This document shows, piece by piece, positions 1,548-4,200 of a DNA stretch of 64,000 bases (the first letter of the stretch is position 1; each line of letters opens with the position of its first letter). The notes under the pieces are model-generated. The model had not been told where the DNA came from. It worked only from the letters and a program-made list of their open reading frames with translations, and did no database searches. The translations under genes were made by a program, and so were the position numbers. This DNA is from Phaeosaccion multiseriatum (Eukaryota; Protista; Ochrophyta, other classes): contig OZ218950.1 in the NCBI GenBank assembly GCA_965112735.1, forward strand, positions 1,860,001-1,924,000. Direction: 5' to 3'.

Positions 1548-1805
1548 TCGGCTCCAGGCGAGGTTTCTCGGGCCCGATAAAGCAGAAGCCTGCGGCGGCC
1601 TGCGGCCGAAAGTAAGAAGCCTGCGGCTGGCCTGCGGCCAGAAGCCTGCAGAAAGTAGCGAAAAGCCTGCCAAGTCCCCCATTTTTCTCCCAGCCTGCGA
1701 AGCCTGAAGCCTGACCATGGCCTGCGGCCAGAAGCCTGCGCTGGCCTGCGGCCAGAAGCCCGACGCCAGAAGCCTAAAGCCCGAGAAACCTCGCCTGCGA
1801 GCCGA
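1548..1805. mobile_element. MITE-like non-autonomous TIR element (~260 bp)
   Basis: TCGGCTCCAGGCGAGGTTTCTCGGGC (1548-1573) is the reverse complement of GCCCGAGAAACCTCGCCTGCGAGCCGA (1779-1805) apart from a 1-nt indel. The interior is packed with GAAGCCTGCG/GGCCTGCGGCC subterminal repeats. CGGTT occurs at 1541-1545 and 1806-1810 and may be a TSD; the exact ends are uncertain. Confidence 0.7.
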
Positions 1806-1924
1806 CGGTTGTTATAAACGGGCGGGCGATGGATTTGAAGTCGAGAGTGCCCTTTGGCGAGTGGTATGTCTATTTTTCAGAGCTTCCTACACTACTTTGA
1901 CAGGGGAGGTGTGGTACCGAAGCA

Positions 1925-2148
1925 GTCTCGGGACGAACAGCGTCACCTGAAATCGATCAAGCAGCCTTACCGCCCTTCCTGCTTTATACCCCCTGCAGCT
2001 CCAATGCACGTGATCGTACTTTCGCTAGACTGATGCCTCTACTGGCTAGGCATGAGTCAAGTACGACTTTAGCACGTGGGGATAGACCCCAAAGCTGCCC
2101 CCCTCCAGCTGGCTGGAGGTTGGCAGCGCTTGATGGAAGCATCGCTCG
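1925..2148 (-). ncRNA. Putative Fanzor omegaRNA: scaffold ~2148-1947 plus guide ~1946-1925
   Basis: Lies immediately 3' of the Fanzor stop codon. Helices visible: enclosing stem 2128-2134/1956-1962, hairpin 2094-2127 (GCTGCC..CCTCCAGC / GCTGGAGG..GGCAGC), and a 72-nt nested stem 2007-2078 (CACGTG, TCGTACTT/AAGTACGA, GACT..ATGCCT/AGGCAT..AGTC). The structure ends at GATCGATTTCAGG, an IS607-like right end. The boundaries are inferred. Confidence 0.7.
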
Positions 2149-3944
2149 TCACCTGGACCATGTCATTGTCAACCCTTGGTCCACGATGCTCTTGATGAAT
2201 ATGTTGCGGGCCCCATTCACGTCTCGCCCGCATCTAAAGTTGCAAAGGTGGCACCGGAACACCTTTGCACCACCCAGATTGTAGCGTACGGCGCCACACT
2301 CGGAGCACGTCTTGCTCGTGTACTCCTCTGTCACCATGACGACGTTGGTCCCCTTCTCGAGAGCCTTGGCTTTCAGCATCTCGCGAAATTTATAGTGGGA
2401 CCATGTCATCATGGCTCTGGCCGTCTTGCTGTTGATCCTGCGGAAGCCACGGGCCTGCTGCCTCCTCCGCACCATATCCTGGGTGTTGAACTTCGGCAGG
2501 AAGACAACATCGTACTCATCACACAAATACTTGCATGTCTTTCGGTGCACATCCTTCACGAGATTCTTGAGGCGCCGGATCGCACGATGCCACGCTCGAC
2601 GCCGCCGATAGCGGACCTTGGGCTTGACTGTATCATCGACGGATCGAGATTGTAGACGATCCAGGTGTGCACAAAGTCGATAGACGCGCCCCACATCGCC
2701 CGGGGCCACCTCCGTGACAACTCCGTGGTGATCGATGACGGTGTTGAATGTGCGCACACCTGGGTCCAGCGCACACAATCGAAGGTCGCTGGCATCTCCG
2801 TCAAAATCCTTCTTCAGAACCCTCTTCTCCGTAACCACCGCCCAGAAGTTGCCGCACCTGGAGGAAATGGAGATTTTGATGATATCGCAAGAAGGCAGGG
2901 CGGTTTCAGATGAGATTAGATGGTCCATAAGTCAATGGCCCAGGCCCAGGCAGATACGTTGATAGCTACACACCTGTCCTTCTGAAGAATGAGCTCTCCT
3001 CCCTCGAAGGCACTGAGGTCCTCACACGCACGAAGGGGCTCGCCGTTGGTGAAGGTGGTGAAGAGTTTAAGACCACATCCCCCGTCCTCGAGCTCCTCAG
3101 TCTTCCATGTTTTGCCTGGCACTCTCATGGTCTGCACGTCCTTCTTCCGTCTGAAGCGCAGCTCGTACTGGTGTTCGGGGTTTTTCCTGCGCTTGGCCTT
3201 GTTGCTCTCGTCGGCCTTGAGAAGATCCACCATCGCCGCGTCCCGGATTGCCGCAGGCGTCTCCAGCACCCACGCTGTTCTGCGCGGAGTTGGAGCAGCA
3301 TCCCGTCGGTCTGGCTTGTTCTTCCTCCCGCTACCCGGTCCCTTTCTCCTCTTGTTGTTGTTGACGCGCCGCGGCTTCACCCCTCCATGCACATGGAGCC
3401 CGACGACCTTGGCGCGAAAGTCCTTCGCACTCATTGCGCATTTGCCCTGCTTGTGCATAGAGAGGCACTTATTGTAGGTCCATCTTGAAGTCCCAAACCA
3501 TCCGTTCAGCCTCTTGGTCCAGGCCGGAGTCGGACGAAGCTGGATGCGCCTGGCACGATTCTCGGTCGCGATGTCCTCCTCTTCTTCCTCCACCCTCCTC
3601 CTCTTCTTCCTCCATCCTCTTCTCTTCTTCGCGTCTTGGATCACCCCGCCCATTCTCTCCGCCCAAGAAGCAGTCGCCTGTGGCCAGGAGAACCTTGGCC
3701 ACCCCGGCCCACGGGGCAAGGTTGGCACCACCTTGACCAGTCTCCACCATGCTTTTCGTGCGTGCACTCCGTCAGCAGGCCTTGAGGCGTTCTCGTCCGT
3801 CACGGTAGTCTGAGCCGGGTCGCGGAGACGGAAGAGCCACTCGCGCGCCACAGTGGAGCACCAGTGGTTCCAGAAGGGCCGGAACGGGGGACCTGCTGGA
3901 TCCCTTGGCTGGTTTACTCCGGAGAAGTCTACGCTCTCCTCCAT
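2149..3944 (-). CDS. Fanzor2 (IS607 TnpB-like RNA-guided endonuclease), ~559 aa, two exons (3944-2974, 2857-2149)
   Basis: Motifs present: HTH_OrfB-like RARRIQLRPT..WFGTSRWTYN, WVLETPAAIRDAAMVDLLKA, RuvC-I CALDPGVRTF (Fanzor D-P-G), relocated RuvC-II Glu in VTEEYTSKTC, Zn finger CSEC..CHLC, and RuvC-III RDVNGARNI. Removing the intron GTGTGT..TTTCCTCCAG (2973-2858) restores the frame and gives LILQKDRCGNFWAVV. Confidence 0.92.
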
Positions 3945-4080: not shown

Positions 4081-4200
4081 TCGGCTCCAGGTTTCTCGGG
4101 CTTTAGGCTTCTGGGCCGTAGCTACCCCCCTCCAGGCTTCGGGCTTCTGGCCGCAGGCCAGTGGTCAGGCTTCAGGCTTCTCAGGCTGGCTGGGAGAAGA
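4081..4200. mobile_element. Second, diverged end of the same TIR family, inverted relative to 1680-1805
   Basis: TCGGCTCCAGGTTTCTCGGGCTTTAGGCTTCTGG..GGCTTCTGGCCGCAGGCCA..TGGTCAGGCTTCAGGCTTC..GCTGGGAGAA aligns with the reverse complement of 1680-1805. No partner TIR was found downstream. Confidence 0.7.

Follow-up and report, generated by a model that had tools for sequence, protein, structure and literature searches.

A Fanzor2 gene and its predicted omegaRNA, probably descended from a giant-virus IS607 element, on a chromosome of Phaeosaccion multiseriatum

Introduction

Fanzor2 omegaRNAs and their pseudoknot, Fanzor2 copies lacking TnpA, and introns in Fanzor genes have already been described. 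The cryo-EM structure of ApmFz2, the Fanzor2 of the mimivirus element ISvMimi (PDB 9b0l), shows 5' nucleotides of the RNA paired with positions -4 to 0 (PMC11832414). In the reRNA of the IS607 TnpB of ISXfa1, an apical loop forms a pseudoknot with the bases flanking the guide, and this pseudoknot is required (Yoon et al., 10.1101/2023.08.09.552727). The TnpA-less Fanzor2* copies of molluscs and Chloropicon are found in transposons bearing terminal inverted repeats (TIR) and target site duplications (TSD; 10.1101/2023.08.09.552727).

The locus described here lies in a window of 64,000 nucleotides of P. multiseriatum (contig OZ218950.1), to which all coordinates refer unless another locus is named. 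It is likely to be the template of a Fanzor2 omegaRNA that descends from a giant-virus IS607 element, is now located on the host chromosome without a transposase, and ends at position 1867. It shares with ApmFz2 the RuvC triad, which matches residue for residue, a scaffold of 200+ nt located downstream of the ORF, a 5' loop predicted to pair with the last scaffold bases beside the guide, and long stems that appear dispensable. In contrast to ApmFz2, which is viral and has a GGG TAM, the window copy is located on a host chromosome, contains a predicted intron and an expanded stem of 72 nt, and belongs to a clade ending in CG or TG. The predicted pseudoknot is of the ISXfa1 type, for which the proof by compensatory mutations was obtained in ISXfa1 itself; that element differs from the window copy in being bacterial, in its 144-nt scaffold and GGG TAM, and in the presence of TnpA. 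The location on a host chromosome without an IS607 TnpA is shared with Fanzor2*. In contrast to Fanzor2*, the ends of the window Fanzor yielded neither a TIR nor a TSD, and the right end is still of the IS607 type; the ends of the nearby MITEs face inwards, and one of these MITEs inserted separately, 60 nt into the flank. The useful results are a corrected boundary of the omegaRNA, the definition of a clade with CG or TG ends, and a series of three stages of the element in one genome.

The Fanzor2 gene and its intron

The minus strand from 3944 to 2149 carries an IS607-derived Fanzor2 gene with one inferred intron and an intact RuvC D-E-D triad (Table 1). Protein searches were performed for each exon, and the joined frame was translated. 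Exon 1 shares 48% amino acid identity with a paralogue on C14. Exon 2 scores above the cut-off of the TnpB family model NF040570, and its top PDB match is ApmFz2 (9b0l, E 8.5e-21), with D324, E467, and D501 aligned to the D, E, and D of the triad. The triad, in which the glutamate is rearranged (D, then E ahead of the zinc finger, then D), and the C4 zinc finger assign the protein to the Fanzor2/IS607 TnpB class. Both exons are free of stop codons, and the catalytic and zinc-binding residues are all retained. Contigs from four DNA runs of one sample were identical to the assembly across the region. The copy is not an autonomous IS607 element: TnpA is absent upstream, and the end reads CA instead of CG. 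A tblastn search with the TnpA of the C14 paralogue as query found no TnpA remnant in the window.

The 116-nt insert between the exons has GT..AG borders, a CTAAT motif, and a pyrimidine tract, and its removal is exactly in frame; it is probably spliced out of the transcript. A 50-nt repeat inside it (2913-2962) occurs in at least 40 copies in the genome, frequently as inverted pairs 350-500 bp apart, and is likely the terminal repeat of a MITE. The intron edges form a direct repeat, CAG/GTG, and the intron was possibly gained from a transposon. A second direct repeat, of 9 nt (CAGGTGACG, minus strand, 2155-2147 and 1949-1941), covers the stop codon and the element end that had been proposed earlier. 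A hypothetical splice from GT (2152) to AG (1948), the donor of which is weak, would leave the stop codon unchanged and remove most of the scaffold. The repeat and the alternative splice are probably due to chance. An origin of the region by insertion, with target duplication of 9 nt, was also considered and was rejected, as the region is homologous to viral right ends.

Table 1. Features of the Fanzor2 locus and its flanks (window coordinates)
Feature	Position	Strand	Basis or remark
Fanzor2 exon 1	2974..3944	-	N-terminal FWN..W extension, HTH/REC-WED part; Pfam HTH_OrfB_IS605
Intron, 116 nt, GT..AG, predicted	2858..2973	-	with it excised, the D-R-C-G stretch reads as in the intronless C14 paralogue
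Fanzor2 exon 2	2149..2857	-	RuvC with rearranged D-E-D triad, CxxC..CxxC zinc finger; stop 2151-2149
Predicted omegaRNA scaffold/IS607-derived right end, ~265 nt	1867..2132	-	5' edge approximate
5' hairpin, 13 bp (6+7), then conserved GC-TTT linker	2094..2127	-	MFE; hairpin at the same place in relatives
Pseudoknot hairpin GGGG-loop-CCCC; loop strand GTCTAT 2087-2082	2078..2090	-	kept in 19 relatives; pair probability 0.91-0.97
Variable stem, 72 nt (short hairpin in relatives), then conserved TGCA 2008-2005	2007..2078	-	MFE
Long multi-segment stem; holds TTTCAGG (apical hairpin 1962-1945) and, as 3' strand, the earlier guide	1888..2008	-	
Pseudoknot 3' strand ATAGAC + A; counterpart of the TAGGCG end	1867..1873	-	6/6 match, MAFFT columns
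Predicted guide, first 20 flank bases, starts UACCACUCGCC	1847..1866	-	boundary rule of relatives
MITE, 40+ copy family, ~6-bp target duplications	1548..1805	.	inserted 60 nt past the predicted end
Second end of the same MITE family	4081-4200		starts 4081

Paralogues, descent, and selection

Two Fanzor paralogues, on C14 and C3, are present in the genome. The C14 copy (L032/L042) is a complete IS607 element with TnpA and Fanzor2, surrounded by virus-like genes in a region that appears giant-virus-like, and its TnpA scores above the IS607 cut-off. It is related to the window copy by 67% identity in RuvC, the same hairpin, a TGCA-like motif, and the loop/end pairing, and differs from it in retaining TnpA and the TAGGCG end, in being intronless, and in its position among virus-like genes. 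The element occupies L042 3227-5541, between kinase-like fragments and close to a DHFR-thymidylate synthase-like gene. The Fanzor frame of the element extends into the omegaRNA region, and the start of its pseudoknot hairpin is duplicated. In the phylogenetic tree, the window Fanzor2 is the sister of the C14 copy (support 98/95). It lies inside a clade (96/99) whose loci carry Resolvase genes, and thus groups with the eukaryotic and viral TnpBs associated with IS607 TnpA.

The C3 copy is broken and folded back. This decayed paralogue (L041 4587-7019; C3 ~2,422,600-2,425,000) contains three fold-back inversions, the largest of which is a palindrome of approximately 1 kb of the 3' end of the gene with arms of 89% identity, a possible source of hairpin RNA. 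The pseudoknot hairpin is absent from it. Upstream, the C3 and window copies share about 110 nt; downstream, the C3 sequence is scrambled. One genome thus holds an intact viral IS607, an intron-bearing host copy, and a decayed copy, which makes a host role of Fanzors testable here.

The Fanzor2 protein is under purifying selection. The dN/dS ratio between the window and C3 copies was 0.31-0.39, and that of the window branch about 0.4 (12 non-synonymous and 9 synonymous changes, Fisher p 0.04). Between the window and C14 copies, synonymous sites were saturated.

With the same ancestry and the same boundary, the locus might be a recent fossil that guides nothing, in which a transposon remnant that is not spliced out accounts for the 116-nt insert, or in which production of the RNA has ceased. 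The loss of TnpA and of the terminal CG, the high-copy repeat within the insert, a 3' half too diverged for covariance models (see below), and the decay that the C3 paralogue did undergo are all consistent with this reading. It is nevertheless unlikely in view of two stop-free exons with every catalytic and zinc residue kept, an insert bearing intron signals that can be removed exactly in frame, and a pseudoknot preserved by a double change, although these points would still be compatible with a very recent death of the locus.

Structure of the predicted omegaRNA

Sequence comparison supports the assignment of the region downstream of the stop codon to the right end and omegaRNA of an IS607-derived Fanzor2, as the first-pass annotation had proposed. 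The pseudoknot hairpin and the TGCA motif following it are common to the right ends of IS607-Fanzor2 relatives, and a sequence profile built from these relatives matched the window with E 1.8e-4, a match limited to 2104-2013. Homology to the right ends of the relatives is thus detected by profile in the 5' half and weakly in the 3' half. A search of the region against Rfam gave no match, and a DNA search of the own genome found no second copy of the 3' region, so the right end is single-copy.

The 5' hairpin, the GGGG-loop-CCCC hairpin, and the 72-nt stem are all present in the minimum free energy (MFE) structure. The motifs named in the first-pass annotation were all found where it had placed them, and its multi-segment stem of 72 nt was confirmed at 2078-2007. 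Its GC hairpin is likewise present (2127-2094), with 13 bp (6+7) rather than the 14 counted. The 7-bp stem ATCAAGC/GCTTGAT (2134-2128 and 1962-1956), thought to enclose the whole region, consists of complementary strands, but it is absent from the MFE structure of 2148-1925 and has a probability of 0.00 in 2148-1847. The sequence GGGGGTATAAAGC, suggested as a pseudoknot partner, pairs instead with 1906-1900 and 1917-1914.

The predicted order of elements, hairpin, pseudoknot hairpin, variable stem, TGCA, long stem, short linker, and pseudoknot strand, is that of the folds of the relatives. The fold had a z-score of -2.76 for 2148-1925 and of -4.38 for 2135-1867; z alone does not fix the boundary because it varies irregularly with the chosen end (-2.3 to -5.1).

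The element end in relatives and in the window

The loci of close relatives were collected, and three families were present at several insertion sites. In all three, the copies were 99% identical through TAGGCG or TAGGTG and unrelated beyond. Since the copies diverge right after TAGG(C/T)G, the clade ends in CG or TG and not in GG, the dinucleotide that had been presumed for the window copy. In the closest clade, the end lies 177-266 nt beyond the conserved hairpin. The register of the loop/end pairing is fixed: bases 4-9 of the hairpin pair with bases -2 to -7 of the end, forming 4-6 pairs in 19 out of 19 relatives examined. Loop and end covary among these 19 relatives, with G-C or A-T at pair 1 and C-G or T-A at pairs 2 and 3. 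This pairing is the pseudoknot described for ISXfa1 and ApmFz2. Another degenerate copy in a genome assembly (L060 4757-4941) has CA in place of the CG end and a T-G pair in the pseudoknot.

Among 570 candidate ends in the window, only the end at 1867 offers six out of six Watson-Crick pairs with the loop GTCTAT (ATAGAC, 1873-1868); the next-best ends reach 4/6, 1941 reaches 3/6, and 1946 reaches 2/6. The distance of the 1867 end from the hairpin, 224 nt, is within the range of the relatives. A chance complement of six bases is expected with a probability of about 13% in the 570 nt scanned and of about 2% within the expected range. One pair, C-G in the C14 copy and most relatives, is T-A in the window, with both sides changed; this is within natural variation because the pair also occurs in L104, a distant relative. 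In a MAFFT alignment, TAGAC of the window falls in the columns of the TAGG of the relatives. Considering the pairing rule of the relatives and the unique 6/6 match, the scaffold most likely extends from about 2132 to 1867, about 80 bases beyond the end proposed earlier, with the guide starting at 1866. A 5' loop pairing with the bases just before the guide is predicted at 1873-1868 and not at 1946.

The alignment of the 3' half gave mixed results. In a summed alignment to five relatives, 1945-1867 scored better than shuffled sequences (p 0.01, the last 7 nt being shuffled as well), whereas 1945-1874 showed no significant homology (p 0.09) when the last 7 nt were kept constant. Pairwise local alignments of 1945-1867 to the relatives were mostly not significant, and the pairing energy of 1945-1874 was no better than that of shuffles (p 0.14-0.17). 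Because covariance models built from the relatives without the window sequence failed to detect its 3' half, we regard 1867 as the very probable, rather than the certain, boundary of element and scaffold.

The end at TTTCAGG (1946) of the first-pass annotation, with a GG core and a guide at 1945-1925, would agree with the GG or GGG used by the known IS607 elements ISXfa1 and ApmFz2, and the interval 2148-1925 is structured. The structure does not stop there, however: the helices 1996-1990/1906-1900 and 1984-1979/1925-1920 span 1946 with probabilities of 0.6-1.0, and an apical hairpin has TCAGGT (1950-1945) as one of its arms. According to the MAFFT alignment, the proposed guide lies in the 3' strand of a stem common to the relatives, which are conserved well past the equivalent of 1946; of the copies in the own genome, C3 is scrambled and C14 too diverged for this comparison. 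A genome search with 1945-1925 revealed no target within two mismatches. Together with two pseudoknot pairs out of six, a score of -11.7 bits in a simple end-motif matrix, and the CG or TG ends of the clade, this makes an end at 1946 highly improbable. An RNA built to this boundary would miss its pseudoknot.

A shortened element ending in ..GTGACG at 1941, with the guide from 1940, has a terminal CG as in the clade, three pseudoknot pairs (GTC/GAC), and the top score of the same matrix (5.7 bits; 1867 scores 1.0). It is improbable all the same, as the relatives show 4-6 pairs, the long stem would lose the partner of its 5' arm, helices cross this point with probabilities of 0.6-1.0, and 1941-1939 itself takes part in the pairing of the stem.

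Predicted function, guide, and flanking repeats

With the end at 1867, characterized Fanzor2 systems serve as the model for RNA processing, loading, and TAM-dependent cleavage (PMC10530073, PMC10432273, PMC11832414). The locus would descend from a giant-virus IS607 element and, having lost its transposase, persist on the host chromosome. The omegaRNA may be cut from the 3' end of the Fanzor transcript as an RNA of approximately 280 nt and loaded on the protein. Its core would be the pseudoknot of 2087-2082 with 1873-1868, the long variable stems being looped out between, and the bases from 1866 on would act as the guide, by which the RuvC nuclease would be brought to matching DNA beside a short motif, the TAM. 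The TAM probably ends in CG. At the left end, a single usable junction was available among the relatives (L079/L080), where the shared sequence begins with CGCG, and for this reason the TAM of the window copy is a guess. The predicted protein, the ~265-nt scaffold, and the guide start define a Fanzor2 RNP that can be built, and the pairing provides a simple rule for placing the guide across a clade of IS607 elements of algal viruses with CG or TG at the end in place of GG.

The corrected guide has no perfect match in the genome. Its best near-match, 16 out of 17 bases, is located after TCG in an exon of an IRE1-like kinase (L146 1501-1517; C4:4391537) and is treated as a chance match because the flanking homology stops and the codon run that it represents is a common one. 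Viral contigs gave 17 matches of 15-16 nt, none of which extend, and which fit a common F-G-E-W-Y codon string. In the simplest reading, the guide comes from the sequence flanking an old insertion, and its target, the empty site, no longer exists. In mobile IS607 elements, guided cutting of empty sites protects the element, as established for TnpB. An immobile locus may be an orphan that still works or a fossil of recent date; domestication of the gene is less likely. In the last case, the alga would have retained a virus-derived Fanzor2 with one fixed guide for a purpose of its own, e.g., defence against the source giant virus or action on a host gene. Immobility, the intron, purifying selection, and the compensated pseudoknot would fit such a role, to which we assign a low probability.

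One whole MITE and one MITE end flank the Fanzor2 gene, their termini facing it.
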